Part shown: in pieces, positions 1-33,830 of the stretch
How the letters are laid out: each line of letters begins with the position of its first letter
How positions within the stretch are numbered: the first letter of the stretch is position 1
Virus record (IMG/VR): IMGVR_UViG_3300020442_000005
Coordinates: 1-64,000 of that record
DNA length: 64,000 bases
Reading direction: 5' to 3' (one strand)
The notes under the pieces: generated by a model
Databases searched by the model: none
Seen by the model: only the letters and a program-made list of their open reading frames with translations
What the model was told of the DNA's origin: nothing
Made by a program: the position numbers and the translations under genes

Positions 1-540
1 GATCTTACCGTAGTTAATGATGCCGCGACAGCCTTAAATGAGTATGAGGACATGAGATATAGTTCCGTATTGCCCAGGATACCAACCGTCGTAGTTTCTG
101 ATTCGTATAACACGAGAAATCCACGCAAAGAAACATATAAAGACGGAACTGAGATGATACACATTGTTCGCAAACTGCCAAATGTTGTTGCATATATTCA
201 GACTACAAAAGGCAGAGAGGTCAAATCGCGTGATGAGTGGAACAAATTAATGCAGGGAAGACAACCAACTGGCGAGCTGACTTCTACAGACATCCCGCTG
301 AAATCGACAAAACTTTCACGATATGGCGCGCCAATTGCAAAGGTAATTAGAAAAGCACAGCAAGAAACTCGTACATATGATGAAATTGCGGTATACGCAG
401 ATATTAAACCGGCCATAAATAAGTTTTCCGGCAAGGCACGAAAGTGGGGCGGCGAAGTTCGTTACACTTTCTTTATAATCGTACCAAAAGAAACTTATGT
501 GCCAAGATCTAAGTTGAAAACTAAGAGAAAGTCGAAATGA
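1..540 (+). CDS. Hypothetical protein, 5'-truncated (frame is open from base 1: DLTVVNDAATALNEYEDMRY...)
   Basis: Frame 1 has no stop from 1 to 540; its stop overlaps the next ATG (ATGA). Confidence 0.7.
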   Translation, partial: DLTVVNDAATALNEYEDMRYSSVLPRIPTVVVSDSYNTRNPRKETYKDGTEMIHIVRKLPNVVAYIQTTKGREVKSRDEWNKLMQGRQPTGELTSTDIPLKSTKLSRYGAPIAKVIRKAQQETRTYDEIAVYADIKPAINKFSGKARKWGGEVRYTFFIIVPKETYVPRSKLKTKRKSK

Positions 541-1232
541 AAGTTACAAGAAGACAAATCAGAGAAGCAATAAGACGTGTGATAACAGAAAGCAAAATTA
601 CTCCAGAACCGCCATACATTACGCACGGTAATCCTGGATATCAAGAAGCGTCGTCCAAATGGAACATATGGTTTTTTGAAAACACTCGTGATTGGGCATG
701 GACAAACATGCCCGAACAAAAGGGGTGGAATACTGAAAATCTCATGTATGATTTTAGAACTTCCGATACTGGTGGTGCTGAAATAAAATACGGTATTGGT
801 TTTGGATATCGATGGAGCAAATATAGGAATAATACCCTGCGGTTAATTGTTATTCCGGAACCCGGCTATGGTCAGCCAGAAGGTATATATATGCGATTTG
901 AAATTGGGCTAGGTGGTATGAGGGATATGGATGCTCGATCAATGGCCGAGATGTATTTCCCGTTTAAGAAATACAAGCCGGCAAGGGCAAGGGATAAAGG
1001 TATGTCGGCTCCGGAGATTATAGAAGAGCTATCTTTTTACCATGACGAAATTGTAGAATGCATGCGTATCCTTGTACCTTTGGGTAGTAAAACCGTAAAA
1101 AGTCTGCCGGCTTCAAAATTTTACGATATAGTTTGGCCAAAGTTAGAAAAATATGCAGCGCCAGGTATGGACGAGCATATAAGATTAAGAGAAGAACGTA
1201 TATCACTACGAAACAAACGAATGGGATTATAA
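537..1232 (+). CDS. Hypothetical protein with MKVTRRQIREAIRRVITES leader
   Basis: ORF track; the leader matches the family at 9389-11533. Confidence 0.85.
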   Translation: MKVTRRQIREAIRRVITESKITPEPPYITHGNPGYQEASSKWNIWFFENTRDWAWTNMPEQKGWNTENLMYDFRTSDTGGAEIKYGIGFGYRWSKYRNNTLRLIVIPEPGYGQPEGIYMRFEIGLGGMRDMDARSMAEMYFPFKKYKPARARDKGMSAPEIIEELSFYHDEIVECMRILVPLGSKTVKSLPASKFYDIVWPKLEKYAAPGMDEHIRLREERISLRNKRMGL

Positions 1233-1309
1233 AGATTATTAATTAATTTTTGTAAAAGCTTGGTCACAACATAAATTTCTTTCATACTTAAATTAGGGAG
1301 AGTTTATGT

Positions 1310-2872
1310 ATGTTGTTTTTATTATCACTACTGGTGGGCTGCAGTGATATCAGTCTGGGTAAGATAGAGCAAAGAGAAGCTGAGATCCTTGTTCATCCTA
1401 CTCACATAGATTTTGGTAACCTAGTTTCTGGATTCGAATCAGACCAGAAGTCATTCACGGTAATAAATACAGGCGATGATGATTTAATAATCACGTCGCC
1501 ATTTTTATTATCTGGTGAGGACAAATTCGCTATCGACGATTCAGGAGAAGAGGATATAGTTGTAGCAGCTGGAGAGCTTGTAGAATTCCATGTTACATAT
1601 ACTCCAGAAACGTTTGAGCATAACTCTGGAATGATTGAGTTTCTATCGTCCGATGAAGACGAACCAGAGATACAGGTATCACTTGAAGGTTTCGGAGACG
1701 CTCCAGTCATGACTGTGGATCCAGTCGACTTTGACTATGGCGATATATCGATAGGGTGCGATAACGAGGAAAGAATAACGATAACAAATGATGGTAATCT
1801 ACCGCTTACCATTGATAGCGTAGTTCAAATGGTTACTCAGCCGGCAGACATTGTATTGGAGTTTGGATCATTACCAGATCTGCCATGGCATTTAGATCCA
1901 GGTCTCAGTGTTGATTTCTTAGTTTCATATATACCCAACGACGTCGGGCAAGATGATTCTATAATTACAATTGCCGGCAATGATCCATACACCCCGGAGA
2001 TCGAGGCAATTCAATATGGCTCTGGTGACGTTGAACAATATTATTCTCAACGTCATATTCAGCAAGAGATACAGGTTCTAGATATTCTATGGATCATCGA
2101 TGATAGCGGATCGATGAATCGGGTTCAGTCTAATCTTTCTGGCAACATGCAAATGTTTATGAATGTTTTTGTTCAGTCACAGGCAGATTATAGAATGTCT
2201 GTTATAACAACATCAGATCCAATGATATATCAGATCGTTGATGCCACAACCCCTAACGCGACTCTGACTATGCAACAGATGGTTTCGGTTGGAGTACATG
2301 GCTCTGGTGTTGAAATGGGTCTAGAGATGGCTTACCAAGCTTTAAACGATGTAACAAGTGCTGGTCCTGGTGGTAGCTTTTTTCGAAACAATGCAGACTT
2401 AGTTTTGATATTTGTTTCAGATGAACCTGATCATAGTCCTGAACCAGTTTCATATTATACGTCGTTCTTTTCTGGATTGAAGCCTTCCGGTATGTTTTTT
2501 CCATATGCGGTTATTGGCGATATGCCTGGTGGATGCTTAATGCCAACCATGTTTGGAAACTACAATGTCCAAGCCGGTGAAGGATACTGGGATGTAGTTG
2601 ACTACTTTGGAAGCCAATGGTTTTCTCTGTGCGCAACCGACTGGGGAAACCAGTTACAGAATCTTGCAAACAACATTACCGGTCAATGGTCATATGAGCT
2701 ACATGAAAGTGATCCAATAGAAAACACAATCGAAGTGTATGTTAATGGTCAGATAGAAACTGGGTGGGTTTATAACCCTGCTAGAAACACTGTTGAGTTT
2801 ACAGAGGGTAACATACCCGAACCTGGTGACACAATTGAAATTAACTACGCTTTATGGGGGTGCTATGAATGA
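1310..2872 (+). CDS. Lipoprotein with two Ig-like (choice-of-anchor D type) repeats and a vWA domain
   Basis: Lipobox LLVGC at residue 11; repeats HPTHIDFG / DPVDFDYG..ITNDGNLPL; MIDAS-like DDSGS; later FVSDEPD; GGAGAG RBS. Confidence 0.8.
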   Translation: MLFLLSLLVGCSDISLGKIEQREAEILVHPTHIDFGNLVSGFESDQKSFTVINTGDDDLIITSPFLLSGEDKFAIDDSGEEDIVVAAGELVEFHVTYTPETFEHNSGMIEFLSSDEDEPEIQVSLEGFGDAPVMTVDPVDFDYGDISIGCDNEERITITNDGNLPLTIDSVVQMVTQPADIVLEFGSLPDLPWHLDPGLSVDFLVSYIPNDVGQDDSIITIAGNDPYTPEIEAIQYGSGDVEQYYSQRHIQQEIQVLDILWIIDDSGSMNRVQSNLSGNMQMFMNVFVQSQADYRMSVITTSDPMIYQIVDATTPNATLTMQQMVSVGVHGSGVEMGLEMAYQALNDVTSAGPGGSFFRNNADLVLIFVSDEPDHSPEPVSYYTSFFSGLKPSGMFFPYAVIGDMPGGCLMPTMFGNYNVQAGEGYWDVVDYFGSQWFSLCATDWGNQLQNLANNITGQWSYELHESDPIENTIEVYVNGQIETGWVYNPARNTVEFTEGNIPEPGDTIEINYALWGCYE

Positions 2873-3387
2873 CTTTAAAAAATTGTATGCTTATTTTGGG
2901 TGTAGGAATACTTGGCTTTGCGTTAGGTATCTCCGGCAAATACATATACGAAAGTTCCTCCGTGCACGCGTACCAGTGGAAAACACCTCCGATAATAATT
3001 AATTGCTACGGTGAAGACTTTAGCCAAACTGCAATGATAAGAGCAATACACTATTGGACCGTAAGAGGATATCCAATTGGATTTTACGAACACAATCCGC
3101 CACCCTCCGTTTGTGAAAACGATTGGCTTTATGGAATGATTATTATACGTAAGGCTCCACTTCTCAAGCTGGCACCAGAGACTCTTGCTTCAACGAGAAG
3201 ATATACTGCTTTAAACGAGATGCGTGGTGCCGTTATAGAGTATCGCCGCGGGTCTTACAACCTTGACCTTTTAAACGAGCACGAACTTGGACACGCCTTG
3301 GGTATGACCCACGTTGAAAGGCCTGGTCATATCATGCATCCTATTTACGACCAGATGGGTGAACTGTTCGATCTCAAAAAGAAATAG
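2869..3387 (+). CDS. Matrixin-family (M10-like) zinc metalloprotease, N-terminal membrane anchor/signal
   Basis: HELGHALGMTH (HExxHxxGxxH) plus Met-turn HIMHP; hydrophobic N-terminus. Confidence 0.85.
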   Translation: MTLKNCMLILGVGILGFALGISGKYIYESSSVHAYQWKTPPIIINCYGEDFSQTAMIRAIHYWTVRGYPIGFYEHNPPPSVCENDWLYGMIIIRKAPLLKLAPETLASTRRYTALNEMRGAVIEYRRGSYNLDLLNEHELGHALGMTHVERPGHIMHPIYDQMGELFDLKKK

Positions 3388-3389
3388 CC

Positions 3390-3945: not shown

Positions 3946-3962
3946 AATCCTATCCTAAGTTT

Positions 3963-5480: not shown

Positions 5481-8108
5481 ATGTCTATACCAGACAGTAA
5501 AAAATTAAGAAAATATATAACGCAATTATTGAAAGAGCATATGCTACTCGAAGCCGCCGGTTCTATGGGTTTGGCAGCTGTACTTGCACGTGCCTTAGCC
5601 GACAAAATACTTGACGACGTCGATCGAATTGGCTTTGTATACATAGTTCAAAAACATAATGCACAATCGCGATGCAATATACCACTACTAGACGTCGTTG
5701 AAGATTTGGTGAAAAAAGACCAAGTTATAGCATTGAAAGTGCGTCCAAAGAAAAAGGAGTATAGCGTTATTGCTACTAGCTTCTCCAAGCGCATGTTGCC
5801 GAATGAGTTAGGCGCAGATAACGCAATTTTCGTGCAAAGCATAAGAAATCATGCATATCAGGATTACCCGGGCGATGCTATTGTATTGGGCAACGCTTAT
5901 TTTAACGATGTTAAAATCCCGGGATCGGGCGCGCATGGTTTAAGAAAGGAAGATTTAGACAAATTTGAAGCTATAGGGAATGATTTCCTTTCGAAGTACG
6001 TTAAATCCGCAGAGAATGAAAAGAAGATTCTCGAAGTGTTCGAATCCGTGGGCGCAGTTGGTTACTTTGCAGCTGCATTTATGGTATTTATAACCCAGGC
6101 CGAATCTGATGGCTCTCGTGGCCACGTATCCAGCTTATCGGCCACAAGCATGGGTGGAAAGCTAGTTATTGGTACCAATGCAATGACAGTTACAGCTGAG
6201 ACAACTGGCATATGGAATATGGGTATGTCATTTTTTTCGAATGATCAAATAGAACACATTAAAAAATCCATGGACTTACCTATCGGTCTTAACGTACCTA
6301 TAACAGTATCTCCAAAGCAGAGTTTTAATAATTTATCTAAACAAATGGTCGCATTTGACGAAAAGTTTCGTAGGATTATCGCTAGCAACACGACCTATAT
6401 ACACGAGTTGCAACACTTGATTCAACATGCCGGCTACCATACGCCATCTTCACAGTTAGATCCAGGCGCCGACGTCGACATAACCTCACCAACGCACCCG
6501 CTACATCCCTATAATGGTGACCCTCCAAACACTGCCGCAAGAGAAGCTGGTCTTGCGAAATCAAAAAGACCACCAGCCCAGCATATAAAGATTGTGTCTC
6601 AGATGCTAAAAGAACTGAACATAATAAAAGGTGAAGAAATAAAGATTTCCGGAATCAACAGCCCAGCATTCGAACTGGATGACGCAGCATTTTCATCCAC
6701 TACTATCGGGCTGTCGACAAGCATCTTTGTTAAAGAAAATGTATATCTAGAAGTGAACGTCGCCGATCACTTAAGTGATGTAGTTTTAAAACACATGTCG
6801 GATACGTATTTATCGGCACTTCCGTCAAAAAACATGTTTCCCGAGGAAAGAGAGGCTCAAATAAAAAGGTATGGTTCTGCAGCCGGGAAAAAATCGGTTG
6901 CAAGAAAATATCGTTTATTTCTAGCCGATATTCTTGCAGATATTGGAATATACACTTATCAAAAGTACATTTTTGATCGTACGGATCAAATAAAGGCTGA
7001 TATGGGGATTGGACCAAGAGATAAAACTATACCCGACGCATTAAAAGTCGCCTCTGAAAGGTTTCCGGACAGAACAGAAAAGGCGATCGAGCGTTTAAAT
7101 AAGTCTTTGTTAAATAAAGGCGGTAAACTATCAAAAGATTTAATCGAAAAAATGCGACCTGTATTTCCAACCATGGTTTTTTATTCGCGTAAATTGGGCG
7201 TTTTTATAGGTAAAGGTAAATACGGCCCACCCGGATGGATTAAGCAGCACCTATATATTGAATTCTTAGAAAATTATGATATAGACGAAGATCTATTGAA
7301 TGAGTTGAAAAAAGGGTCTGAAGACAGATATTATCTAAGTAAAAACCAAAAAGACCTAGGTCTCAGGTTATTAAAAGAGTTGGATTTAGTTTTGGTGATT
7401 GCACAGTCAGGTGCCGATACAGCTTTCATGGGTGAAGATGAAAGGCTTGAAGCAGAGGCCGGCCGGTCAGGCCGAGTAAGCCGAGGATATGCTTATTCAG
7501 GCTCACAATGGTATCAAAGGGCTAATGGATACACATGGCGAAGATTACAGACAGAATATGACGCTGAGTTTGTGACACAAACAGCTGGTTTTTTGTATGG
7601 CATCTATATACTAGGCACAGAGGACGATGCAACCGCAAATCGTATTTTAGCTCCAACGTATCTTATGGATTATTTTAGGCGATCTCCAAAGATTCAGCCT
7701 ATGATCGAGTTTTTGTTTGCATTGCTTGGAGAAGATATTACAAAGGTAATATCTGGTATAAAAAACTTTTCCAAGAAATCTAGACACAATTTCCAAGGAT
7801 TTATCGATCGCGATTTAGCAAAACAAAAGTCTGATCAGTACCGACGTTTGGCGATTGACATGATAGATAAGATTCAAAATATATCAGACGAAGAATTGAA
7901 TGACTTGCGAATAGATATAGCAAACAATAGCGTGGAAATGATATACGGTTCTAGAACAAAAAAAGCTACTCCAAAGCAAATCAATGATTTAACACCTGTA
8001 ATTAATGAATTTCTTGCAAGTGGAGGCTCGGTCGACCGCTTAACTCATTTACATGTAGAGACTGTAAAGGCTATAATAGGATTCGTTGGTAAAAAACTAT
8101 TGGAGTAA
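5481..8108 (+). CDS. Large hypothetical protein with HExxH motif (875 aa; start reassigned from 5283)
   Basis: GGAG RBS before ATG 5481; upstream extension is low-complexity intergenic DNA; YIHELQH at 6396-6416. Confidence 0.75.
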   Translation: MSIPDSKKLRKYITQLLKEHMLLEAAGSMGLAAVLARALADKILDDVDRIGFVYIVQKHNAQSRCNIPLLDVVEDLVKKDQVIALKVRPKKKEYSVIATSFSKRMLPNELGADNAIFVQSIRNHAYQDYPGDAIVLGNAYFNDVKIPGSGAHGLRKEDLDKFEAIGNDFLSKYVKSAENEKKILEVFESVGAVGYFAAAFMVFITQAESDGSRGHVSSLSATSMGGKLVIGTNAMTVTAETTGIWNMGMSFFSNDQIEHIKKSMDLPIGLNVPITVSPKQSFNNLSKQMVAFDEKFRRIIASNTTYIHELQHLIQHAGYHTPSSQLDPGADVDITSPTHPLHPYNGDPPNTAAREAGLAKSKRPPAQHIKIVSQMLKELNIIKGEEIKISGINSPAFELDDAAFSSTTIGLSTSIFVKENVYLEVNVADHLSDVVLKHMSDTYLSALPSKNMFPEEREAQIKRYGSAAGKKSVARKYRLFLADILADIGIYTYQKYIFDRTDQIKADMGIGPRDKTIPDALKVASERFPDRTEKAIERLNKSLLNKGGKLSKDLIEKMRPVFPTMVFYSRKLGVFIGKGKYGPPGWIKQHLYIEFLENYDIDEDLLNELKKGSEDRYYLSKNQKDLGLRLLKELDLVLVIAQSGADTAFMGEDERLEAEAGRSGRVSRGYAYSGSQWYQRANGYTWRRLQTEYDAEFVTQTAGFLYGIYILGTEDDATANRILAPTYLMDYFRRSPKIQPMIEFLFALLGEDITKVISGIKNFSKKSRHNFQGFIDRDLAKQKSDQYRRLAIDMIDKIQNISDEELNDLRIDIANNSVEMIYGSRTKKATPKQINDLTPVINEFLASGGSVDRLTHLHVETVKAIIGFVGKKLLE

Positions 8109-8110
8109 AC

Positions 8111-9007: not shown

Positions 9008-9366
9008 GGGGCCGTAATGGCTTCGACGGGGTAGAATCAAGAGGAGTGTGCATGCAGGTAAGATACGACCTTAACAGTTCAAAACAAATAGTTGCAAACA
9101 ATAACGACAACTTCGAAGTAGCTTTAGCTGCATAATCGACGCCGGTGTCTCTTCCGGTGTGAAACAAGAGGCTTAGCCAGTTAGTCGAGGCAAACATATC
9201 AAGACTACAATGGTTATCCTGGTAACAGGTGGAATCTCCAGCCAGAGGGAGATTGGTGGAAAATTATTTGGCTAGTTTGTTAATTAACAACATAATTAAC
9301 TATGCATGTGAATGACACAAATTAAGACTGCTGCGGACGCGGGTTCGACTCCCGCCGGCTCCACCA
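9008..9366 (+). ncRNA. ssrA: tmRNA, tag reading frame ANNNDNFEVALAA* at 9094-9135
   Basis: 5' GGGGCCG pairs with 3' CGGCTCC-ACCA with a G3:U pair; T-arm GCGGGTTCGACTCCCGC; AAATAGTT before resume codon GCA; ALAA C-terminus. Confidence 0.96.
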
Positions 9367-9388: not shown

Positions 9389-9661
9389 ATGAAAATTACG
9401 AGAAGCCAACTAAGAAGAATCATTAGAGAATCGTACAAATACAAAGATCCATACCCATCTCGCCGGAGACAGCAAAAGAAGCAGAATTGGGTAATTGTGT
9501 GTGATTGGACACAACATTCTGATCCTTCAAAGCATAAGTATGGCGAAGCTGTATATGCTGAATATTTTGGCACTAAGAGAGATGCTGAACGTAAGGCTTT
9601 GCAATACGCAAGGGAAGAACATGCACCAATGTATGTTGAACCAGGTTTTGAAGAGGGCTAA
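9389..9661 (+). CDS. Leader-family protein (MKITRSQLRRIIRES)
   Basis: ORF track, shared leader. Confidence 0.85.
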   Translation: MKITRSQLRRIIRESYKYKDPYPSRRRQQKKQNWVIVCDWTQHSDPSKHKYGEAVYAEYFGTKRDAERKALQYAREEHAPMYVEPGFEEG

Positions 9662-9662
9662 G

Positions 9663-9962
9663 ATGAAACTAACAAAACGCCAACTTCAATTAATTGTTAG
9701 AGAATCTCTTGTAGAAGCTTACGAAAAAACTGAGTATATTCAAGCAGGTCTTGGTGAAAGGTACAGAATGAAAGAAAGTATGGATATGGATCCCTCGTTC
9801 TATGCTGATGTATCGGAACGTTATGATGGAGACATAGCCTATGAACGCGTCATGGCAGTAATTGAGGTTTTAGCAGCATATCCCGCCGCACATTCATATT
9901 TAGATATAGAGGACGTTGCGAGCGAAATCATCGACTCACTAGAAGAAAAAGGTTTAATTTAA
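9663..9962 (+). CDS. Leader-family protein (MKLTKRQLQLIVRES; start reassigned from 9495)
   Basis: ATG 2 nt after the previous stop; leader begins here. Confidence 0.85.
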   Translation: MKLTKRQLQLIVRESLVEAYEKTEYIQAGLGERYRMKESMDMDPSFYADVSERYDGDIAYERVMAVIEVLAAYPAAHSYLDIEDVASEIIDSLEEKGLI

Positions 9963-9991
9963 CCATAAACATAAAGTCATAGAGGAAAACA

Positions 9992-10249
9992 ATGAAAATC
10001 ACAAGAAGACAATTGAAAAAAATCATTAAAGAAGAGAAAGCAAAACTTATACAAGAGGCACAGTACGGAGGCGGACAGTACGGTTTACGTAGTGATGACA
10101 GAGCCGGACAGCAAAAAGCAATTGAGATCGCATTAGCTCATTTGCAAATGCTTGATGACGCATTGTATGAAGCCGGCATTGAAGTTGGAATGGGTCAACT
10201 TAGAGGTATAGTGATGGATGCATTGAATCACCCAACATCCGGATATTAA
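9992..10249 (+). CDS. Leader-family protein (MKITRRQLKKIIKEE)
   Basis: GAGG RBS, shared leader. Confidence 0.85.
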   Translation: MKITRRQLKKIIKEEKAKLIQEAQYGGGQYGLRSDDRAGQQKAIEIALAHLQMLDDALYEAGIEVGMGQLRGIVMDALNHPTSGY

Positions 10250-10557
10250 TGATGAAAATCACAAAAAGACAACTTCGAAGAATTATTAAGGAAGAAAAAT
10301 CAAAGATTATGTCGGAGGCTTTTGGAAGTCCATCCGGCAAAGATTTTGGCTTATATGATCAGATTCAAGAAAAACTTGAATATGAACTATTGATTAATAT
10401 TCAAAGTCAAATATTAAATACTCTTCCTCCTGCAATTCGTCGTACCATTGATTTAGGAACAGAAGCAGAGATGATGGGCTTTGATGATTTAATGGAACAA
10501 GTCCGAGAATGGTTTGAGAATTATGTATCGGCGATGACAGATCTGGATCGGAGATAA
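10249..10557 (+). CDS. Leader-family protein (MMKITKRQLRRIIKEE)
   Basis: TAATG coupling, shared leader. Confidence 0.85.
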   Translation: MMKITKRQLRRIIKEEKSKIMSEAFGSPSGKDFGLYDQIQEKLEYELLINIQSQILNTLPPAIRRTIDLGTEAEMMGFDDLMEQVREWFENYVSAMTDLDRR

Positions 10558-10560
10558 ACA

Positions 10561-10980
10561 ATGAAATTAACAAAAAGACAACTTCGAAGAATTATTCGTG
10601 AAGAAAAGAAAAGATTGATCAAAGAAAGCTCTATGGAGTTGTCATATCAATACGCAGAGCAATTGCTGCAAGATGCCGCCCGTGAATTAGCCGATAATTT
10701 TAGCGAGGGTCAATTAGGCAATGGTGCGCATGACGCCAAAATGAACGGCGAAAATGCGCTCTATGAATTACTGACTCTAGCTGCAATGAGAACAAGAGGG
10801 TTAATAGAACATAAGAAAAAAGCAAATTTGCTCAACGAGTATATTGATCGCGATTATCTCTTAGATCGTCTCATGGAGGTACTCATTGAAGAAGGCGCAG
10901 TTAAACCGGGGCCGGGTGCGCGTGATGATGCTTTACAATACTTAGGTTTCTTAGTCAAGGTATATGACAGAGGCAGATAA
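10561..10980 (+). CDS. Leader-family protein (MKLTKRQLRRIIREE)
   Basis: GGAG RBS, shared leader. Confidence 0.85.
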   Translation: MKLTKRQLRRIIREEKKRLIKESSMELSYQYAEQLLQDAARELADNFSEGQLGNGAHDAKMNGENALYELLTLAAMRTRGLIEHKKKANLLNEYIDRDYLLDRLMEVLIEEGAVKPGPGARDDALQYLGFLVKVYDRGR

Positions 10981-10981
10981 A

Positions 10982-11533
10982 GTGAAGATAACTAGAAAAC
11001 AACTAAGACTAATTTTAGAGACAGCTGCTAAGCAAAAAGATAAAGAGGCTGTGTTTTCAATTATATACACTTCGGCATATGTCCAAGAATATATGGAAGA
11101 TCTTTATAATGCCATATGGTCCTCTTTTGAAAATCGCGGCGAACAAGATGATTATAAGATTGTTAATGTACTTGAAGATCTAACTAGCATGCTTACAAGA
11201 CCGGTCATGGACTTGGGATCTGAATACAGCCTATACACAAAAGAATTGGATGCTGCTGATGATGAGGGAATAGAATTCGAAGCCGGCAATGCCGAAAAGT
11301 TCGATTTCGAGGAAAGTGTTTATCTGGGAATAGAGAATATTAATCGCTTTATTAACGAACAGACTCCGATGGGAATGAGCGCGCTTGAAGCATTAAGGCA
11401 TGTTAAAGATCGTAAGATCAATATCGGATTGATTAAAAGAACTACAGATTTTTTACTTTCTCTAATGGATGATGATAGAGTCTTATCTGTTCTTGACCAA
11501 ATCGATTATGAGTATCAGAGGATGAAGATGTGA
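10982..11533 (+). CDS. Leader-family acidic protein (GTG start: MKITRKQLRLILET)
   Basis: GTG 2 nt after the previous stop, GAGG 8 nt upstream; the ORF track start 10964 is in the same frame. Confidence 0.8.
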   Translation: MKITRKQLRLILETAAKQKDKEAVFSIIYTSAYVQEYMEDLYNAIWSSFENRGEQDDYKIVNVLEDLTSMLTRPVMDLGSEYSLYTKELDAADDEGIEFEAGNAEKFDFEESVYLGIENINRFINEQTPMGMSALEALRHVKDRKINIGLIKRTTDFLLSLMDDDRVLSVLDQIDYEYQRMKM

Positions 11534-12450
11534 TCACTAACGGTAACGTACTTTATATATTTGATTTCGATGATACTTTAGCAATGACTAATAGCGCAGT
11601 TCGCGTTATTAGCGCGTCAGGCCAGGTAAAAAGACTTGATAGCAGAGAGTTTGCTAAATATCGATATCAAGCAGGTGATCAACTAGACTTTTCAGAGTTT
11701 ACTCGAGCTGAAGGAACATTGATCGATAACACAGTACAAGAGATGCAAGAAGCAATTTCCCGGTACGGGATAGAAAATGTCTTTATTGTAACAGCCCGGG
11801 CTGAAGATGAGCCTGTGTTTAACTTTTTAGACTCTTTTGGGCTGGTTGTGCCTCAGGTGATCGCAACAGAAGGTTCAGCCGGAAAAGCACCATGGCTAAC
11901 AAAAACCCTTCTTTTGGGAAATTACGACAAAGTGATCGTTTATGAAGACTGTCGTAAAAACATAAAAATGCTCAGAGATGTTGTAGAAGCCTACAACGAA
12001 GAATTAAATAGAGAAGTACTGTACAGTGCAGTATGCATTTTACCGGATGGTAGACAACAAATGATTGAATCAAGAATTAGAAGGTTTGTAAGAAAAATTA
12101 TTCTAACAGAAGGAGTTAGAAATACAACTCAAGGCGCAAATGCGATTATAAACGTCATGTTGGATAATCCAGACTATAGTATTCGGAATGCTGCAGCTGA
12201 CGTATTTTGGAACTTTGAACAGCTTGGAAACCGCCGAGCTGCTCGATTTCATAGGGCTTCTATGGATAGGGTCGGCGAACAGATACAAAAACGGCTAGCG
12301 AAGACTGGAGCTGATCCACATAATCAACCAGAAGGGTTTGTGTATACGCCAGAAGAAAAAGCGCTAGTCGATCTATACCATAGCCGGGTTCCTACGAATC
12401 AACACGGTGAGTACGGCATTAAACTGGCTGATTGGAGAAAATTTAGATGA
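11530..12450 (+). CDS. HAD-superfamily phosphatase-like protein with C-terminal extra domain
   Basis: FDFDDTL (DxD motif I), IVTAR motif II, GK..W, YEDC..N motif IV. Confidence 0.8.
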   Translation: MITNGNVLYIFDFDDTLAMTNSAVRVISASGQVKRLDSREFAKYRYQAGDQLDFSEFTRAEGTLIDNTVQEMQEAISRYGIENVFIVTARAEDEPVFNFLDSFGLVVPQVIATEGSAGKAPWLTKTLLLGNYDKVIVYEDCRKNIKMLRDVVEAYNEELNREVLYSAVCILPDGRQQMIESRIRRFVRKIILTEGVRNTTQGANAIINVMLDNPDYSIRNAAADVFWNFEQLGNRRAARFHRASMDRVGEQIQKRLAKTGADPHNQPEGFVYTPEEKALVDLYHSRVPTNQHGEYGIKLADWRKFR

Positions 12451-19481: not shown

Positions 19482-20507
19482 ATGGTATCATACAGCTTGG
19501 TTTCAAATACTGGCTCTCAGTTAGGATTGATTGATCAACAAACTATTTTAGAACAAAAGCTAGCTGATTTTTGGGATTCACCGTATGAAATACACCAGTT
19601 AAACGAATATTGTGAGCTGGTTTGCGAAGGTGATTTGCTACTTGAGTTTAGTCTCAAAGATTTTGTTATGGAACATCTGGTCAACGTTCTGCAGGCCTCA
19701 ATTGGCGCAGCGCTAGAGGCTGGAATAACCATTGGGACCGCTGGAGTGGGAACTGGTGGTGGTGTTGTTGCTGAAACTTTAAACGATCTTATATTCTTTG
19801 GATACTCTGTTGGTGACTTTGTAGTATCTGCCAAGGGTATATTTTCGGACTTGATGGAACTCAAGGAATTGTTGATTGAAATATTTAGTACCTCTATCGA
19901 AGATGAGCCGCAAGACATATACGACGCGGTACAGGAAGCAATTTCAGGTGCTGGTGATTTAATCAACCGTTTAGGTTTTGATTTTGATGAAATGATGGAA
20001 AAAATAACAAATGCATTTCAGTCACTTACAAAAAAAATCGCTAAGCCAGCCGGAGATATGATTGCGATTTTTAGCCCTGTACCAGGCACTGATGCCGCCG
20101 TACAAACGTTTATGAGTGAATTTGCGGATGATGCATTTAAGCTGTTTATAGAAAAATACGATTTAATTCCTGATTGGCTTAAAGAACTTTTACATGATCC
20201 AGATAGTTTACTCAATTTCGTCGAAGAAGGAATTGACGCCACTGTTAATTTTCTTGATGATATGATGAATACATCTGCAGAAGAAGCAGAGTCTCTGCTC
20301 GGTGCGATCGCATCCATAGGCCAAGATATTACAAATCCAGTTCTTGCAGTTCTTAAAAGAACGGGTCATGTCGAAAAGCTAATTAAATTTCTGAAAGGAG
20401 CTGCACTTGATGCCGCCGAATTTGCAGTTGAAACTATAGAAAAAATATATCCAATTATGATGGCTGGATTATCCGCATTGACTGTTATAACCACTGAAGA
20501 TTACTAA
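19482..20507 (+). CDS. Acidic helical hypothetical protein with Gly-rich hydrophobic segment
   Basis: ORF track; IGAALEAGITIGTAGVGTGGGVVA. Confidence 0.75.
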   Translation: MVSYSLVSNTGSQLGLIDQQTILEQKLADFWDSPYEIHQLNEYCELVCEGDLLLEFSLKDFVMEHLVNVLQASIGAALEAGITIGTAGVGTGGGVVAETLNDLIFFGYSVGDFVVSAKGIFSDLMELKELLIEIFSTSIEDEPQDIYDAVQEAISGAGDLINRLGFDFDEMMEKITNAFQSLTKKIAKPAGDMIAIFSPVPGTDAAVQTFMSEFADDAFKLFIEKYDLIPDWLKELLHDPDSLLNFVEEGIDATVNFLDDMMNTSAEEAESLLGAIASIGQDITNPVLAVLKRTGHVEKLIKFLKGAALDAAEFAVETIEKIYPIMMAGLSALTVITTEDY

Positions 20508-20818
20508 TGTCTAAACTACGTGAAGAGATTGGTCGCAATTATAGTACGATTGACCTGGATTTTAACAAGCCATACAGCATGATGGACAACACCGACGTTG
20601 ACGTCAACATGTTTGCAATGGACAACGGTAAATGGTCAGCTGAAGTAAAATGCATAAGTAACCCAAAGCTATCAACGCACATGAGAATCTTTAATGACGA
20701 AGCATCTGCGAATCATTGGGCAAGAATGCAAGTCGATCGCATAACAAGAAAGACCATGAATGAAAGTAAAATACGATTAATGGTAAGAACTGTTCTAAAA
20801 GAGCATTTTAGCCTGTAA
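20507..20818 (+). CDS. Hypothetical protein; C-terminal leader-like motif NESKIRLMVRTVLKE
   Basis: TAATG coupling. Confidence 0.75.
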   Translation: MSKLREEIGRNYSTIDLDFNKPYSMMDNTDVDVNMFAMDNGKWSAEVKCISNPKLSTHMRIFNDEASANHWARMQVDRITRKTMNESKIRLMVRTVLKEHFSL

Positions 20819-21473: not shown

Positions 21474-21502
21474 GTGTATAACCTTTACGAGCAGGCTAAA
21501 TT
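21474..21502 (+). promoter_or_regulatory. Promoter GTGTAT-N17-TAAATT followed by ATATATGTAA
   Basis: Shares TAAATTATATATGTAA with the site at 22050. Confidence 0.6.
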
Positions 21503-21543
21503 ATATATGTAACAATCAAGTTATAGCAAAAAATGGAGTTACC

Positions 21544-22049: not shown

Positions 22050-22078
22050 GTGTAACCTGTATAACAACAAGATAAATT
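22050..22078 (+). promoter_or_regulatory. Promoter GTGTAA-N17-TAAATT followed by ATATATGTAA
   Basis: 16-nt identity with the preceding promoter's -10 region. Confidence 0.6.
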
Positions 22079-22122
22079 ATATATGTAAGAAGAAATCTTA
22101 CAGCTAACCTCTAGGAGACAAT

Positions 22123-23223
22123 ATGTCAGCAAAAAACCCGATCACTATTGCAACTTTCAATGTAGTTGCTCCAAATCTTCCGGCCTCTATTGCAGTTCTG
22201 ATGCGAGGACCAACTGGTGTTGGTAAATCACATCTAGCAAAACAGATCGCCGATCACCATGGCCTCCCGTTCATCGATGTCCGCGGTTCTACAATGTCTG
22301 AAGGTGACGTTGGCGGCTATCCCGACATCGAGTCAATGAAAGAGTCTGGTATCATGACGTTCTGTATGCCATCTTGGTTTGTCCGCGCTTGCAACGAACC
22401 AGTTGTTCTTATGCTTGACGAGTTGAATCGCTCTCTTCCAGGTGTTCAACAAGCATTCTTCCAGATTGTTCTTGACCGCGAGCTCGGTAACGATAAGAAT
22501 GGTAAGCCATACCGTTTGCATCCAGATACTCGAGTTATTGCTGCCATCAACTTCGGTTCTGAATACGACGTCAACGAAATGGACCCCGCTCTTCTTCGTC
22601 GATTTTGGGTAGCTGACATCGAGCCATCTACTGAAGACTGGCTGTCTTGGGCCGGTAACAATGACATCGACCCAGTGATGATGGACTTTATTCGCCAAAA
22701 TCCTGCTCATCTCCGTGTTGATCCTTCAACTGTTGAGCCTGGTACAGTCTGTCCAAACCCTGCATCTTGGGACCGTCTCAATCAAGCATTGACTCACATG
22801 AATATGAGTCCAACATCGGTTGCCGGCGCGCCGCGGCCTGATGGGATATATGCATTGTCTATGGGTATGGTTGGTACAGAAGCCGCTATTGCATTTTGCG
22901 CTTTCATGGAAAACTATGCTCGCCAAATCTCTGCAGAAGATGTTCTAGATGGTAAGGTTACAAAAGAAGTCATCAAAGATGCTCAAGTGTCAATGATGAA
23001 CAGTGTCATTGCGAAAGTATCAGAACACTCAAAAACAAATCAGTGGACTAAAAAGCAGGCTCGTAACGTTGCTGACTTCATGGAAGCATTGCCTGGTGAA
23101 ATGATGGTTGACCAGTGGAACAAAATCACTGAATCTCAGAACATCGCAAACATTCAGGTTATGCACAAACTCATCGGTCAAAAAATCGTTGAAGCTGTTA
23201 AGAAAAGCCGACAACTCAACTAA
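22123..23223 (+). CDS. MoxR-like AAA+ ATPase
   Basis: GPTGVGKS Walker A, LMLDELNR Walker B, DPALLRRF arginine finger. Confidence 0.9.
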   Translation: MSAKNPITIATFNVVAPNLPASIAVLMRGPTGVGKSHLAKQIADHHGLPFIDVRGSTMSEGDVGGYPDIESMKESGIMTFCMPSWFVRACNEPVVLMLDELNRSLPGVQQAFFQIVLDRELGNDKNGKPYRLHPDTRVIAAINFGSEYDVNEMDPALLRRFWVADIEPSTEDWLSWAGNNDIDPVMMDFIRQNPAHLRVDPSTVEPGTVCPNPASWDRLNQALTHMNMSPTSVAGAPRPDGIYALSMGMVGTEAAIAFCAFMENYARQISAEDVLDGKVTKEVIKDAQVSMMNSVIAKVSEHSKTNQWTKKQARNVADFMEALPGEMMVDQWNKITESQNIANIQVMHKLIGQKIVEAVKKSRQLN

Positions 23224-23228
23224 GTTGG

Positions 23229-23260
23229 ATGGGGGAGGCTAGTCCTCCCCCATTGTGTTT
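23229..23260 (+). terminator. Hairpin terminator
   Basis: ATGGGGGAGG-CTAGT-CCTCCCCCAT then TGTGTTT. Confidence 0.75.
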
Positions 23261-23274
23261 ATTGGAGAATACAT

Positions 23275-23547
23275 ATGGACAGAATATACAAAGGTGATTT
23301 AGTCATGGTGAAATCAACGCAGCAATTTGGTATTGTTGTTGAGATCGTCCGACGATCACCTCAAAACCCTGATTGGGATTTGATTTGTGTTCATTATGAC
23401 GGAAGTATTGACGAGGTGAGTCCTCGTACACTTACAAAAAATGTAAATAAATTCGTAAAATCTGTGAAAGACGTAGAAAAAGTGGATAAATTAAGTATGT
23501 ACCTAGCAAAAAGGAGTGAATATGTCAAAGAAAGAAACCGGAAATGA
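23275..23547 (+). CDS. Small KOW/SH3-like hypothetical protein
   Basis: YKGDLVMV..FGIVVEI; GGAG RBS. Confidence 0.65.
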   Translation: MDRIYKGDLVMVKSTQQFGIVVEIVRRSPQNPDWDLICVHYDGSIDEVSPRTLTKNVNKFVKSVKDVEKVDKLSMYLAKRSEYVKERNRK

Positions 23548-24931
23548 GGCATTAGTCTCGCGAGAAGTTTCTGCTGAAGAAGTCAGCAATTTCAAACTTG
23601 ATGAGTATATTATTCGTCTTATGTGGAAAGAGCCATTCTTTGCAGAGATTTTTAGAATTATGAAGAAAAAATCCACGGATCGCATTCCAACAGCCGGCGT
23701 GTTTATTCAAGACGGCGAAATGCATCTTTGGTACAATCCAAAGTTCATGGCCGGCCTAACAAATGCTCAGATTATTGGTTTGCTTAAGCACGAGTGTTAT
23801 CACTTAATCTATCAGCATACAACAAAGAGGCGACACAAGCCGCACATCATCTGGAATTATGCAACTGATCTTGCAATCAACTCATTGATTGATGAAAACG
23901 AGCTGCCTGAAGGCGGACTTATTCCAGGTAAAGCATTCTCTGCACTCACTCCTGAACAAAAGCAACAAATGGGTCCAAAGGCCGCTGAGCGTTACGAAAT
24001 GATTTCGGCCAAGATTGCAAGTTTTCCAAAGTTTGAATATTCTGAATGGTACTTTGCGCAGCTAATGGATGACGAAGACGTCAAACAAGCGATCGAATCT
24101 TCCGAGGCTATGGGCGGCAAATCACTTAGTGAGGCTCTAGCCGATGGCGACGTTATGATCGATGAAGACGGTAATCTGATCGATGCTGACGGCAACCCGG
24201 TAACAGTTGTCCCAGGTGCCGGTGCTGAAGGTTCTATGGATTCGCATGAAGGCTGGGATGAGCTAACTGACGAGCAGCGTGACGCTGTAAAGGCAACCGT
24301 TCAAAAGGCAATCGAAGACGGCGTCAACAAATGCAACCAATCTAATAAGTGGGGTTCTGTTAGTACAGAGATGCAGCAAGAGTTGAGAAAAATGATTTCA
24401 AAAGAAATCCCATGGCAGTCAGTGCTCAAACAGTTCTGCGGTATGACAAGAAGAGCTGACAGAACATCTTCAGTGCGCCGACTGAATCGTAAGTATCCTG
24501 CTATTCATCCAGGTACTCGTCGAAACTACAGGGCATCGATCGCTGTTTATCTGGATCAATCAGGTTCTGTTTCTGACAGCGACTTAGAAATGTTGTCCGG
24601 TGAGCTGGAAAGCCTTGCAAGCCGAGTTGAGTTTACGTTATTCAACTTTGACACTAGTGTTGATGAGGCATCTGAGAGAACTATCAAGCAGCGTTCGGCT
24701 GTCAGCCTGAACAGAACAAGATGCGGTGGAACTGATTTTCAATGCGTACAAAACCATGCCAACAAAAATGCAAAAAGATTTGATGGCTATCTGGTTCTAA
24801 CTGATGGTTTTGCCCCCGCCACGACCGGCCACAACAAACTGAAAAGAGGTTGGGTGATTGTACCGAACGGCGAGTTACAGTTTGCAAAACCTGGACGTGA
24901 CTTTGAAATCAAAATGCAAGGCAACCAATAA
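23522..24931 (+). CDS. DUF2201-type metallopeptidase-like plus vWA protein
   Basis: HECYH (HExxH), N.A.DLAIN, acidic linker, LDQSGS MIDAS, GGTDF, LTDG; AAGGAG RBS. Confidence 0.88.
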   Translation: MSKKETGNEALVSREVSAEEVSNFKLDEYIIRLMWKEPFFAEIFRIMKKKSTDRIPTAGVFIQDGEMHLWYNPKFMAGLTNAQIIGLLKHECYHLIYQHTTKRRHKPHIIWNYATDLAINSLIDENELPEGGLIPGKAFSALTPEQKQQMGPKAAERYEMISAKIASFPKFEYSEWYFAQLMDDEDVKQAIESSEAMGGKSLSEALADGDVMIDEDGNLIDADGNPVTVVPGAGAEGSMDSHEGWDELTDEQRDAVKATVQKAIEDGVNKCNQSNKWGSVSTEMQQELRKMISKEIPWQSVLKQFCGMTRRADRTSSVRRLNRKYPAIHPGTRRNYRASIAVYLDQSGSVSDSDLEMLSGELESLASRVEFTLFNFDTSVDEASERTIKQRSAVSLNRTRCGGTDFQCVQNHANKNAKRFDGYLVLTDGFAPATTGHNKLKRGWVIVPNGELQFAKPGRDFEIKMQGNQ

Positions 24932-28143: not shown

Positions 28144-28527
28144 ATGAGATACAGTGATAAGGTACAAGAGCATTTTAACAACCCAAAAAACGTTGGGTCA
28201 CTTGACAGGAACGATCCATCTGTTGGTACAGCCGTAGTGGGCGCACCGGCATGCGGTGATGTTATGCAGCTGCAGCTAAAAATCAATGATGAAGGAATTA
28301 TAGAGGATGCAAAGTTCAAGACGTTCGGTTGTGGATCAGCTATCGCATCATCATCATTGGTGACGACACTTGTAAAAGGAAAATCTCTAGAGCATGCCTC
28401 TCAAATAAAAAATGTAGATATTGCAGCGGATCTGGAATTGCCACCACAGAAAATTCACTGTTCCGTCCTTGCAGAAGATGCGATTAAGGAAGCGATCAGA
28501 AACTATAGAGAAAAAATGAACAAATAG
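28144..28527 (+). CDS. iscU: Fe-S cluster scaffold IscU
   Basis: YSDKV.EHFNNPKNVG, APACGDVM, FKTFGCGSAIASSS, KIHCSVLAEDAI. Confidence 0.97.
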   Translation: MRYSDKVQEHFNNPKNVGSLDRNDPSVGTAVVGAPACGDVMQLQLKINDEGIIEDAKFKTFGCGSAIASSSLVTTLVKGKSLEHASQIKNVDIAADLELPPQKIHCSVLAEDAIKEAIRNYREKMNK

Positions 28528-28565: not shown

Positions 28566-28589
28566 GTACATGTACAAACAGGAGCAAAT

Positions 28590-30194: not shown

Positions 30195-30196
30195 TC

Positions 30197-31357: not shown

Positions 31358-31360
31358 ACG

Positions 31361-32480: not shown

Positions 32481-32817
32481 AAAACCATGGGGCCATGAAG
32501 TTATTTGGGCGGAAACAAAAGATTATGTTGGAAAAATACTACATATAAACTCTGGCCATCGATTGAGCCTACAATATCACGAAACGAAAGAAGAAACTAT
32601 ATACGTTTTATCTGGACAGCTAGCGCTATGGACATCTGAAGATGATAATAGCTACATCGTTCTGGGCGAGGGTGCATCGTATCACGTTAAACCAGGGCAA
32701 ATACACAGATTCGGCTCTCTTGAGAAAGAAAGTTTAGGTAAGCCAACAGTATTGATCGAGGTTAGTACACCACATTTGCAAGACGTTAAAAGATTAGCTG
32801 ACGATTACAAGAGGTAA
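32464..32817 (+). CDS. Cupin (mannose-6-phosphate isomerase type II C-terminal-like)
   Basis: VEKPWG, LSLQYH..KEET, HRF, EVSTP. Confidence 0.85.
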   Translation: MTRKVEKPWGHEVIWAETKDYVGKILHINSGHRLSLQYHETKEETIYVLSGQLALWTSEDDNSYIVLGEGASYHVKPGQIHRFGSLEKESLGKPTVLIEVSTPHLQDVKRLADDYKR

Positions 32818-32819
32818 AA

Positions 32820-33017
32820 ATGTATCACAAAGAGGAGTTGTTTAAAAAAATACTAGCTTGGAAACTAGTTTCTATTATGTCAACAACTTTTATAACTTGG
32901 ATTCACATCGGATCAATAATTAAGTCAGCATACTTTGCATTGGTATTGCATACATGCCTAACTATTTTGTTTTATTTGTTTTCATTTATTTGGGATAAGA
33001 AAAAGGAAGACCCATAA
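32820..33017 (+). CDS. Small 2-TM membrane protein
   Basis: Two hydrophobic segments. Confidence 0.6.
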   Translation: MYHKEELFKKILAWKLVSIMSTTFITWIHIGSIIKSAYFALVLHTCLTILFYLFSFIWDKKKEDP

Positions 33018-33053
33018 TTATCTACAGCGTTTATTAATCAACAGAGAGCAACT

Positions 33054-33830
33054 ATGAGATTGAATGAAAGAAGATTAAGAAGGGTTATTAGAGGCCTAGT
33101 TTTAGAATTTGTGTCACAAATCCCACAGCCGCCGCCGGCATTAGAAAAGCTGCCTGGATATGCAAAAAATAAAGAGATGAATATCTTCAATGATTTGCAT
33201 GACCTTGCTAACAGCGCATTGCGAGACGAAGTTTTCAAACCAATTGATGATTCATATAGAAAGGGCCTCGATCAACCAAACGCAGATATCCAAGAGCCGG
33301 ACCACCTAAGAGATCCAGCTAGAAACGACTACTCGGAGTTTCTAGTTTGGGACATTGATGATGATCCACATCCAGACGTAATCCGCGGAATGAAACCAAA
33401 GGCTGGATACATGAAGTTATCTTTAAGCGCAACGGATCTAAGTCGAGAAGCAGGTTTATACTCTAAGGCTGATACGGTCGCGCGACTCAAGGACGGCCGG
33501 CATTTTGCAGAAATGAGTGGTCCCGCAGCTGGTGTTGCAATGACCGCTGGTGTAAAAGCTATTTTAGATCCAGAAAAAGTTCAAGAGTTACTCGGAAGTA
33601 GAAAAAAGATTCAATGGTTTGGAGTACATCCACACGATCAAGGTCATCCGGATTTTCAGGATAAAAACTCACGCCTCGAGGCAGAAGGCGCAAGAAGAAA
33701 ATCATCGGCAGATTACAAACCAGAAGATGAGACGGTACGGACGCCTGGCATGTATGATGGATGGTATGTACGAATGCTCGGCATGCCACCAAAGCCACAT
33801 GCTAAAATGATTTTCGGTGAAATAAACTAA
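33054..33830 (+). CDS. Hypothetical protein with leader variant MRLNERRLRRVIRGLVLE
   Basis: ORF track; leader-like N-terminus. Confidence 0.78.
   Translation: MRLNERRLRRVIRGLVLEFVSQIPQPPPALEKLPGYAKNKEMNIFNDLHDLANSALRDEVFKPIDDSYRKGLDQPNADIQEPDHLRDPARNDYSEFLVWDIDDDPHPDVIRGMKPKAGYMKLSLSATDLSREAGLYSKADTVARLKDGRHFAEMSGPAAGVAMTAGVKAILDPEKVQELLGSRKKIQWFGVHPHDQGHPDFQDKNSRLEAEGARRKSSADYKPEDETVRTPGMYDGWYVRMLGMPPKPHAKMIFGEIN

Follow-up and report, generated by a model that had tools for sequence, protein, structure and literature searches.

In bacteriophage T4, the internal proteins IPI-III and Alt carry a short capsid targeting sequence (CTS) that is removed by the gp21 prohead protease, as are the short propeptides of gp24, gp22, gp67 and gp68. 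The internal proteins of T4 are diverse and fast-evolving and share only the CTS (PMC3012670; PMC5694885). In phiKZ-like jumbo phages such as SPN3US and 201phi2-1, many head-internal proteins, including paralogue families with conserved N-termini on otherwise diverged proteins, are cleaved after Glu at A/S/G-x-Glu sites, but their propeptides are mostly longer than 100 residues, and eight of about 50 head proteins are processed (PMC5694885). No short leader shared across dozens of genes has been described for them. Encapsulin cargo-loading peptides are short portable peptides that load unrelated enzymes into an HK97-fold shell in a bacterial compartment and not in a virion; they are usually C-terminal, sometimes usable in fusions, are not cleaved and bind the shell protein directly, and no sequence relation between them and the peptides studied here is known.

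The window analysed here (64,000 nucleotides, positions 1 to 64,000 of IMGVR_UViG_3300020442_000005) is the start of the genome of an uncultured T4-like jumbo phage of 273 kb. Profile searches of this genome identified a T4-type head module, with TerL, a T4-type portal (Portal_T4, PF07230, 9e-78), a gp21-type prohead protease (Peptidase_S77, PF03420, 8e-27; PHROG head maturation protease, 2e-49; gene at 125400-126011) and a gp23-type capsid protein (Gp23, PF07068, 8e-76). About 55 otherwise unrelated proteins of this phage (about 16% of its ORFs) carry one of two related short, basic, helical peptides ending in hydrophobic-x-Glu. We refer to them as the canonical leader, MKITKRQLRRIIKEE(KxKLLxE), and the class-2 leader, MKN-LRQYIRKIL(L)xE; about 26 canonical and 29 class-2 leaders sit on start codons. 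As in T4, a leader of 10-20 residues is shared by unrelated passengers, but T4 has only about 4-8 tagged genes, and the present phage further differs from it in its two leader classes, its long arrays and the copies that also occur internally, in tandem and at C-termini, with a second cleavage-type site upstream.

The initial annotation had reported variants of the array leader at 537, 5481 and 33054, an internal copy in a HAD protein at 12061 and a C-terminal copy at 20756, and had inferred a portable address tag, usable at any position, that loads enzymes (a phosphatase and an HExxH protein) into the capsid for injection. The observation is confirmed, as all five peptides (all on the plus strand) translate as described, are net basic (+2 to +4) and end in [LIV]-x-E. 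Their helical hydrophobic moment lies in the 86th-97th percentile of shuffles of their own residues for four of them and in the 72nd for 20756. However, when the genome was scanned with an HMM of the array leaders, as had been proposed with the original observation, 26 hits of 12 bits or more were obtained (shuffle maximum 10.6), all of them on start codons, and of the five peptides only 537 came close (8.8-10 bits) while the others were below noise. The five are not significant matches to the array leader but belong to the second class. A pattern derived from 18 other class-2 leaders gave 19 exact hits against 0.075 in shuffles and 19 one-mismatch hits against 2.5, and all five are one-mismatch hits, which corresponds to a false-discovery rate of about 13% for each. 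In separate pattern scans, class 2 gave 19 hits against 0.4 expected and class 2b gave 9 against 0.34, and class 2 always ends in [ILV]-x-E. An HMM of the 18 leaders scored the five at 8.9, 8.4, 5.7, 4.2 and below 3.3 bits, against shuffle maxima of 7.4-10.2, so that each is weak on its own and rests on context.

The peptides at 537, 5481 and 33054 sit at gene starts. The leader at 537..593 opens a 231-aa ORF (537-1232) and scored 8.4-10 bits in the HMMs, and this protein shares about 45 N-terminal residues (E = 4e-4) with the 258-aa ORF (33054-33830) that starts with the class-2 leader at 33054..33110. A CATAATTAT-like motif lies 41 nt upstream of the latter. The peptide at 5481..5555 is a weak class-2-like leader (4.2 bits) at the N-terminus of an 875-aa ORF (5481-8108), whose true start is the ATG at 5481 with GGAG 10 nt upstream and whose motif begins at residue 9. 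This ORF contains an HELQH string, but no Pfam or PHROG family was found for it, Atlas feature hits were 0.76-0.79, below the noise mark, and the Atlas model has a pLDDT of only 0.31, and the HExxH motif has no family or fold support as an enzyme such as a zinc metallopeptidase. The array in the window (9389..11533) consists of six small genes and not of four, starting at 9389, 9663, 9992, 10252, 10561 and 10982 (GTG), each of which begins with the canonical leader (20-40 bits against a shuffle maximum of about 12), and their cargoes are unrelated to each other.

The ORF at 11530..12450 encodes a predicted small HAD-type phosphatase of the MDP-1/T4 Pnk-phosphatase type, with a DFDDT motif at residues 12-16 and a match to phrog_415 (1e-05). 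In an AF2 model, the HAD domain (residues 1-178) is confident (pLDDT 86-98) and matches MDP-1, AphA (probabilities 0.96-0.99) and other HAD folds in the PDB, whereas a helical tail of 110 residues is of low confidence. The class-2b leader-like helix at 12061..12114 (residues 178-195; helix 179-194 in the model) lies between them, with M-I-E just before it and L-T-E at its end. This basic helix after the last strand and, in this phage, the further tail distinguish the protein from the known small HAD phosphatases. The same junction motif is present in a homologue of a related phage (G001, one of three related contigs considered below) and across a large HAD family (187 homologues), where it is the C-terminal helix of most of the 118 homologues examined. 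In this family the motif often lacks the final Glu and follows the last strand of the fold in nearly all members, and there it may simply be a structural helix.

The C-terminal class-2-like motif at 20756..20806, preceded by M-N-E|S, lies within the last 21 residues of a 103-aa ORF (20507..20818), for which no plausible frameshift into the next ORF was found. Although its HMM score is below noise, the motif and its stop codon are conserved in 14 of 15 homologue clusters, in which the length is also conserved, and the one cluster that lacks it has a class-2-like motif at its N-terminus instead. Among metagenome homologues, internal copies are common; leaders have a median of 10 open codons upstream, so that most are N-terminal, while about 10% are internal and a few are C-terminal. 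Of 26 internal copies, 14 have hydrophobic-x-E within 12 residues upstream, against a background of 18% (p = 4e-5), and the same holds at 12061 (MIE|S), 20756 (MNE|S) and 172431 (QLE|G). A Glu before a helix can, however, also be an N-cap.

When 51 tagged ORFs were compared by BLAST, their cargoes fell into 43 clusters and were mostly unrelated, and two cargo families occurred with both leader classes, indicating that the motif is a portable module. Selection acts on the protein and not on the DNA, as synonymous codons vary and the upstream DNA is only 32% identical. In 205 distinct metagenomic leaders, L8 is kept in 99%, I12 in 98% and E14 in 98%, nothing is conserved after about residue 23, and 74% have a second hydrophobic-x-E at residues 16-26. 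The leaders, of 14-23 residues with I/L/V at P3, differ in length and P3 preference from the long phiKZ/SPN3US-type propeptides, and the protease family differs as well.

Four lines of sequence evidence connect the leader with the head. A gp21-type protease is present, and the leader ends in the [LIV]-x-Glu that such proteases cut. The FLTE|A cleavage site of T4 gp23 (residue 65; PMC5694885) aligns with VLRE|A in the capsid protein of this phage, and the site is conserved as [LIV]-x-E|A in relatives. Finally, an HMM built only from the first 30 residues of a head-module protein from 29 other phages, the orthologue of the gene at 126392 that lies between the protease and the scaffold, retrieved the canonical leaders of this genome in register, with leaders making up 18 of the top 20 hits and 10 scoring above the shuffle maximum. 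In addition, the scaffold candidate and that head protein carry 2-4 times the expected number of [LIV]xE sites, and the scaffold is acidic (pI 4.6) whereas the leaders are basic (pI 10-12). T4 N-termini end in the same way (gp24 ...LLRE|S, Alt ...LFDE|D, gp22 ...LIAE|A), but those of gp24, Alt, gp22, gp67 and gp68 show no similarity to the leader beyond this ending, T4 leaders being acidic or neutral, and profile alignment (hhalign) of gp67, gp68 and gp22 with the head-module families gave no significant match (E = 0.12-0.61). A structure prediction of the protease-leader complex gave no answer.

We consider it somewhat more likely than not that the motif is a cleavable capsid-targeting leader of the T4 CTS kind, in a new sequence form and on an unusually large scale. 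In this view, the phage builds a T4-type prohead from a portal, an acidic scaffold core, a gp21-type serine protease and a gp23-type shell, and a basic amphipathic helix of about 14-23 residues, in two interchangeable classes, would copy the N-terminal motif of conserved head-core proteins and so carry its passenger into the core. The prohead protease would then cut after the Glu of the terminal [ILV]-x-E and free the passenger inside the head, which would later leave with the DNA. As non-N-terminal copies usually carry a second hydrophobic-x-Glu site just upstream, the helix could be cut out wherever it sits, which would explain fused cargo-leader-cargo proteins and C-terminal copies such as those on the HAD phosphatase and the 20507 protein. 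The analysis demonstrates the motif families, their enrichment and start-codon position, the unrelated cargoes, the conservation across a phage clade, the head-module resemblance, and the T4-type protease with its conserved site in the capsid protein, whereas binding to the core, cleavage, presence in virions and injection are inferred. There is no direct evidence that any tagged protein is in a virion or is cleaved, about 55 tagged genes is far more than any known set of packaged proteins, and most tagged genes lie in arrays far from the head module, in regions that look like early or accessory regions. The interpretation given in the initial annotation is thus partly supported, namely for a portable module that can occupy more than one position, while loading into the capsid remains an inference.

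A more far-reaching reading, which is possible but tentative, is that a clade of uncultured T4-related jumbo phages uses a position-independent capsid-loading helix that can be cut out because it is flanked by prohead-protease sites, that dozens of different proteins (about 55 here), some as cargo-leader-cargo polyproteins, are loaded with it into the head for delivery with the DNA, and that the leader arose by copying the N-terminal assembly motif of the phage's own head-core proteins. If the leader is a capsid ticket, it marks by sequence alone a very large and fast-changing set of proteins that a phage delivers with its DNA, which are candidate anti-defence and host-takeover factors. It would extend the T4 CTS principle to another leader sequence, to internal and C-terminal positions and to polyprotein-like cargo, would provide a simple tag for loading foreign proteins into large capsids, and turns the question of what is inside jumbo phage heads into a testable list of proteins and predicted cleavage sites.

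Among alternatives, the best surviving one, although unlikely, is that the helix is a general docking or oligomerisation module that brings many small accessory proteins to some other common partner, such as a host hub, nucleic acid or a phage factory, and that it has nothing to do with capsids, the hydrophobic-x-Glu ending being just part of the helix. Basic amphipathic helices often bind nucleic acids or acidic partners, the arrays lie in accessory regions at 9-11 kb, 170-178 kb and 237-264 kb, the cargoes are small acidic ORFans typical of host-takeover genes, and tandem and internal copies fit a repeated binding unit. However, this does not explain the in-register match to the head-module protein, the 98% invariant Glu with Ile at P3, the extra hydrophobic-x-Glu upstream of internal copies, or the five tagged genes directly after the capsid gene, a placement seen in relatives too. 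It is also unlikely, though somewhat less readily dismissed than the remaining alternatives, that some of the five peptides, above all 5481 and 20756, are chance look-alikes. Their scores of 4.2 and below 3.3 bits are under the shuffle maxima, and a hit of similar strength at 179633 lies inside an Fpg/Nei H2TH domain and is chance. On the other hand, the motif of 5481 starts 8 residues after a well-supported start codon, 20756 is conserved as described above, and the E-S-basic lead-in is shared with 12061, 115935 and 161205.

It is doubtful that the motif is only the conserved N-terminal (or C-terminal) structural helix of one fast-evolving superfamily of paralogues whose cargoes have diverged beyond recognition, without a targeting role. 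Arrays of tandem small genes suggest duplication, one 8-member paralogue family exists, and the position of the helix in the HAD family would fit, but the cargoes range from 50 to 850 residues and include HAD, PAP2 and GNAT-like folds that cannot be paralogues, the same cargo family carries different leader classes or carries the motif at the opposite end, and conservation stops abruptly after the leader. A peripheral membrane-binding helix that places the proteins on the inner membrane is very unlikely since, despite the high hydrophobic moment, the net charge of +3 to +4 and the assembly of T4 proheads on the membrane (PMC5694885), the hydrophobic face is only four or five residues, the conserved terminal Glu-Glu and the flanking cleavage-type sites would have no role, and no membrane-related cargo domains were found apart from one PAP2.

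The leader is found across the clade and, if it is a capsid ticket, would work as a marker across hundreds of uncultured genomes, with at least 592 matches in IMG/VR. In the three related contigs G001, G003 and G004 (167-289 kb), 26, 14 and 10 canonical leaders and 17, 7 and 0 class-2 leaders were detected, respectively, whereas the 160-kb Flavobacterium phage immuto has 1 and 0.

The 64-kb window is the first part of a single contig of 273,025 bp with 40% G+C and about 340 ORFs, of which 92% are on the + strand. At 120.9-132.4 kb the contig encodes a T4-type large terminase, a Gp20-type portal, a gp21-type prohead serine protease (Peptidase_S77) and a Gp23-type major capsid protein. The capsid protein has more than 599 relatives in IMG/VR at 60-88% identity, many of them on contigs of 140-290 kb, whereas the nearest isolates, Flavobacterium phage immuto, Microcystis phage Mel-JY01 and Rhodothermus phage RM378, are only about 44% identical, and the contig was assigned to an uncultured jumbo myovirus of the distant-T4 kind. 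When window DNA and an array protein were used as queries in blastn and tblastn searches of a collection of isolate phages, no match was found. The major capsid protein (genome 130393-132372; 16393-18372 of locus L001, a stretch of this genome) amounts to 659 aa, compared to 521 aa in T4, with extra sequence after the conserved N-terminal core (Pfam Gp23 matches residues 394-649 best), and a strong hairpin terminator follows the gene.

The five leader-like peptides described in the initial annotation, at window positions 537, 5481, 12061, 20756 and 33054, translate exactly as written there, and this observation therefore holds. The peptide at 5481 follows an ATG at 5481 that has a GGAG 10 nt upstream, and the long hydrophobic stretch that precedes it in the 5283 frame is not coding. 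The array of leader-bearing genes has six members in the window, with starts at 9389, 9663, 9992, 10252, 10561 and 10982, and not four. It begins 22 nt after a phage-encoded tmRNA gene (window 9008-9366, + strand) with the tag peptide ANNNDNFEVALAA. The proteins starting at 537 and 33054 share not only the leader but about 45 N-terminal residues (window 537-680 and 33054-33200), comprising a P-x-P-P ... P-G-Y ... N-I segment, and then diverge completely (pairwise E = 4e-4).

In order to determine whether the motif is more than a chance resemblance, we performed the test that had been proposed initially. An HMM of the array leaders, scanned over all six frames, gave 26 hits of 12 bits or more, compared to a maximum of 10.6 bits in residue shuffles, and every one of these hits started on an ATG or GTG. 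The five peptides did not pass this test, as 537 reached 8.8-10 bits and the others scored lower. In contrast, they fit a second motif of 11 or 12 residues, [LI]-R-x-x-[IV]-R-x-hydrophobic-hydrophobic-x(1-2)-E (class 2). A first pattern, written after seeing the five, gave 19 hits against 0.4 expected, and 9 against 0.34 for the 12-residue form; ten of the first 19 were new, and nine of those lay right behind a start codon. To remove the circularity, a strict pattern was derived from 18 class-2 leaders that exclude the five, which gave 19 exact matches against 0.075 in shuffles and 19 one-mismatch matches against 2.5. All five peptides are one-mismatch hits, corresponding to a false-discovery rate of about 13% each. 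An HMM of the same 18 leaders scored the five at 8.9, 8.4, 5.7, 4.2 and below 3.3 bits, which is within shuffle noise, and each of them therefore leans on its context. As a set, the peptides are far beyond chance; that they are variants of the array leader is true only through the second leader class, and 5481 is the weakest member.

The class-2 HMM also found six more class-2 genes and the strict-pattern scan added one at 248446, so that the right end of the genome (248.4-263.7 kb) is a run of about 21 tagged genes. In all, there are about 26 canonical (array-type) and 29 class-2 N-terminal leaders, or about 16% of ORFs, together with a few internal copies (12061, 172431, 178091) and one C-terminal copy (20756). 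Matches at 179633 (inside Fpg/Nei), at 34705 and 38405 (inside DUF444 and PrkA) and at 204891 were set aside as chance matches.

Also, the relation between leaders and the proteins that carry them was studied. After removal of the first 24 residues, 51 tagged ORFs fell into 43 BLAST clusters, namely 41 singletons, one family of eight and one pair, and since both multi-member clusters mix the two leader classes, the classes are interchangeable on the same cargo. In 205 distinct leaders from 61 other IMG/VR loci, L8 is kept in 99%, I11 in 93%, I12 in 98% and E14 in 98%, and conservation ends near residue 23. Codons for identical residues differ in 40% of pairs and the 30 nt upstream are 32% identical, and the constraint is therefore on the peptide, not on a DNA or RNA signal. 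Leaders have a pI of 10-12, while most cargoes have a pI of 4-5.5. Pfam and PHROG scans of the tagged proteins found nothing except a HAD/PNK-type phosphatase (phrog_415) and one PAP2 domain. The family of eight, with members of about 200 aa (genome 133826-134386 and 249584-262464; loci L001, L088 and L089 of this genome), is widespread in uncultured phages (Atlas 0.97) and has a weak GNAT acetyltransferase lead. One copy has a canonical leader and seven have class-2 leaders, and one is fused behind the PAP2 phosphatase domain in the 532-aa protein at 249584. Of the two enzyme cargoes proposed in the initial annotation, the phosphatase is supported, whereas the 'HExxH enzyme' is not, as the 875-aa protein contains an HExxH string but has no family or fold support.

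Whole related contigs were searched for both leader classes. Contig G001 (289 kb) carries 26 canonical and 17 class-2 leaders, G003 (255 kb) 14 and 7, G004 (167 kb) 10 and 0, and G002 (257 kb) 3 and 3, whereas phage immuto (160 kb) has one weak canonical leader and no class-2 leader. The pattern MK[IL]T[RK][RKS]QL hits at least 592 places in IMG/VR, and a word search found many unnamed metagenome proteins that match only in the leader. No paper containing the motif strings was found in a literature search.

The initial claim that the tag is usable at any position held up better than we had expected. Many metagenome homologues carry the leader twice, at the N-terminus and again in mid-protein. 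Among 235 leader instances in the 61 loci, the median number of open codons upstream is 10, but 26 instances have 40 or more and one sits 18 residues from the stop. Two proteins of this genome (177983-178279 and 172158-172835; locus L084) carry two leaders each, one N-terminal and one internal. In the case of the HAD protein, a homologue in G001 (53% identical) has a class-2-like helix at the same junction as the 12061 motif and a canonical leader further on, between a second and a third domain. This 477-aa protein (610-2043, - strand, of locus L093 in G001) is built as HAD domain, class-2-like helix, middle domain, canonical leader and third domain, and looks like three tagged genes fused into one frame. 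Of 118 HAD homologues examined, 97 end within 45 residues of the last strand, and in most of the family the motif is therefore the C-terminal helix, whereas 21 continue into various extra domains. The AF2 model shows a confident HAD domain (residues 1-178), the motif as helix 179-194 and a low-confidence helical tail; a Foldseek search of the PDB with this model confirmed the HAD fold only weakly and gave no aligned ranges. In the case of the protein starting at 20507, all 15 homologue clusters but one keep the C-terminal motif and the stop a few residues later. The exception lacks it but has a class-2-like motif at its N-terminus, and four others also start with an MKIT... canonical-like leader. 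A frameshift at 20756 was considered and rejected, as there is only a 2-codon window without a slippery site and the stop is conserved in homologues.

A possible link between the leader and the head came from the head module itself. In relatives, two small genes between the protease and the scaffold have leader-like N-termini; in this genome the protease gene lies at 125400-126011 and the scaffold candidate at 128606. An HMM built only from the first 30 residues of 29 distinct orthologues of the first of these genes, all from other phages, found its orthologue here (at genome 126392) with 54 bits, and the canonical leaders came next, aligned from the start codon; they make up 18 of the top 20 hits, and 10 score above the shuffle maximum of 7.3 bits. 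The second family gave the same ranking, but within noise. The 126392 protein has 9 [LIV]xE sites against 2.4 expected and the 579-aa acidic scaffold candidate has 25 against 12.7, as would be expected for core proteins that are degraded. Four of the 11 such sites of the capsid protein lie in its first 59 residues, and the last of these, VLRE/A (the slash marking the cleavage position, which is inferred for this phage), aligns with FLTE/A of T4 gp23 at residue 65 and is conserved in relatives (propeptide length from PMC5694885). Similarly, the protease N-terminus (…LLQE/W, …LLTE/W in relatives) resembles …LLIE/T of T4 gp21. Five tagged genes follow the capsid gene directly, and in three relatives the gene after the capsid gene also starts with the leader. 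However, comparison of T4 gp67, gp68 and gp22 with the two head-module families by hhalign was not significant. Complex prediction for the prohead protease with residues 1-45 of the protein starting at 10252 gave an ipSAE of 0.01, which is not evidence either way.

Cleavage-type sites occur on both sides of the motif. Internal canonical leaders are preceded by a hydrophobic-x-E within 12 residues in 14 of 26 cases, against a background of 18% (p = 4e-5), the typical form being x-E-[GS]-[KR]-x-M. The same holds in this genome, with QLE/GK before 172431, MIE/SR before the 12061 helix and MNE/SK before the 20756 helix, and longer N-terminal class-2 leaders start with L-T-E/S or L-N-E/R. The helix could therefore be released wherever it lies. 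However, a Glu at the start of a helix can also be a capping residue, and these sites are consistent with such a model without being decisive.

In T4, the internal proteins and Alt join the scaffold core through a CTS of 10-20 residues that gp21 removes after Glu, and the passengers are diverse and share only the CTS (PMC5694885; PMC3012670). The N-termini of T4 proteins that we retrieved end the same way. The present system has the same machinery and the same logic, but differs from that of T4 in its basic leader, which comes in two classes, in about ten times more tagged genes, in long arrays and in internal, tandem and C-terminal copies. We therefore regard the leader as working like a CTS, although it is not a sequence relative of the T4 CTS. 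The interpretation given in the initial annotation, a portable address tag that loads enzymes into the capsid for injection, is thus only partly supported: the portable and position-flexible nature of the motif is well supported by the sequence analyses, whereas binding to the core, cleavage, presence in virions and injection are all inferences. Capsid loading is the best-supported reading, slightly more likely than not, but it is unproven.

The T4 late promoter sequence TATAAATA occurs 13 times against 21 expected and is not placed before genes. A CATAATTAT-like motif does precede several structural genes and some tagged genes; in the form [CT]ATAATTA[TA] it lies 25-45 nt before the start codons of tail and scaffold genes and of some tagged genes (33054, 161205, 200480 and the 248446 cluster), at window positions 9291, 18722, 33013, 34262 and 41531 and at genome positions 76087, 96078, 98810, 128573, 161161, 200420 and 248408. 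This might be the late promoter, but it overlaps a generic -10 box and was not used as evidence of late expression. A repeated element of about 35-40 nt, TAAATTATATATGTAAG followed by a short hairpin-like GGAGAAACCTTGCAGG, sits 40-70 nt upstream of several genes (window 21497-21540 and 22073-22115; also genome 182124, 214514, 245203, 246217 and 247426) and may be a promoter or operator class different from the one before structural genes.

The window also contains a complete DUF444 (YeaH) - SpoVR - PrkA gene trio (34294-38929, + strand; Pfam E-values 1e-112 to 1e-136). A MoxR-like AAA_5 ATPase is encoded next to a DUF2201 protein (putative metallopeptidase plus VWA-like) at 22123-24931 (+ strand), and NifU/IscU at 28144, thymidine kinase at 8438 and PIN-PhoH at 41860 are further auxiliary genes.
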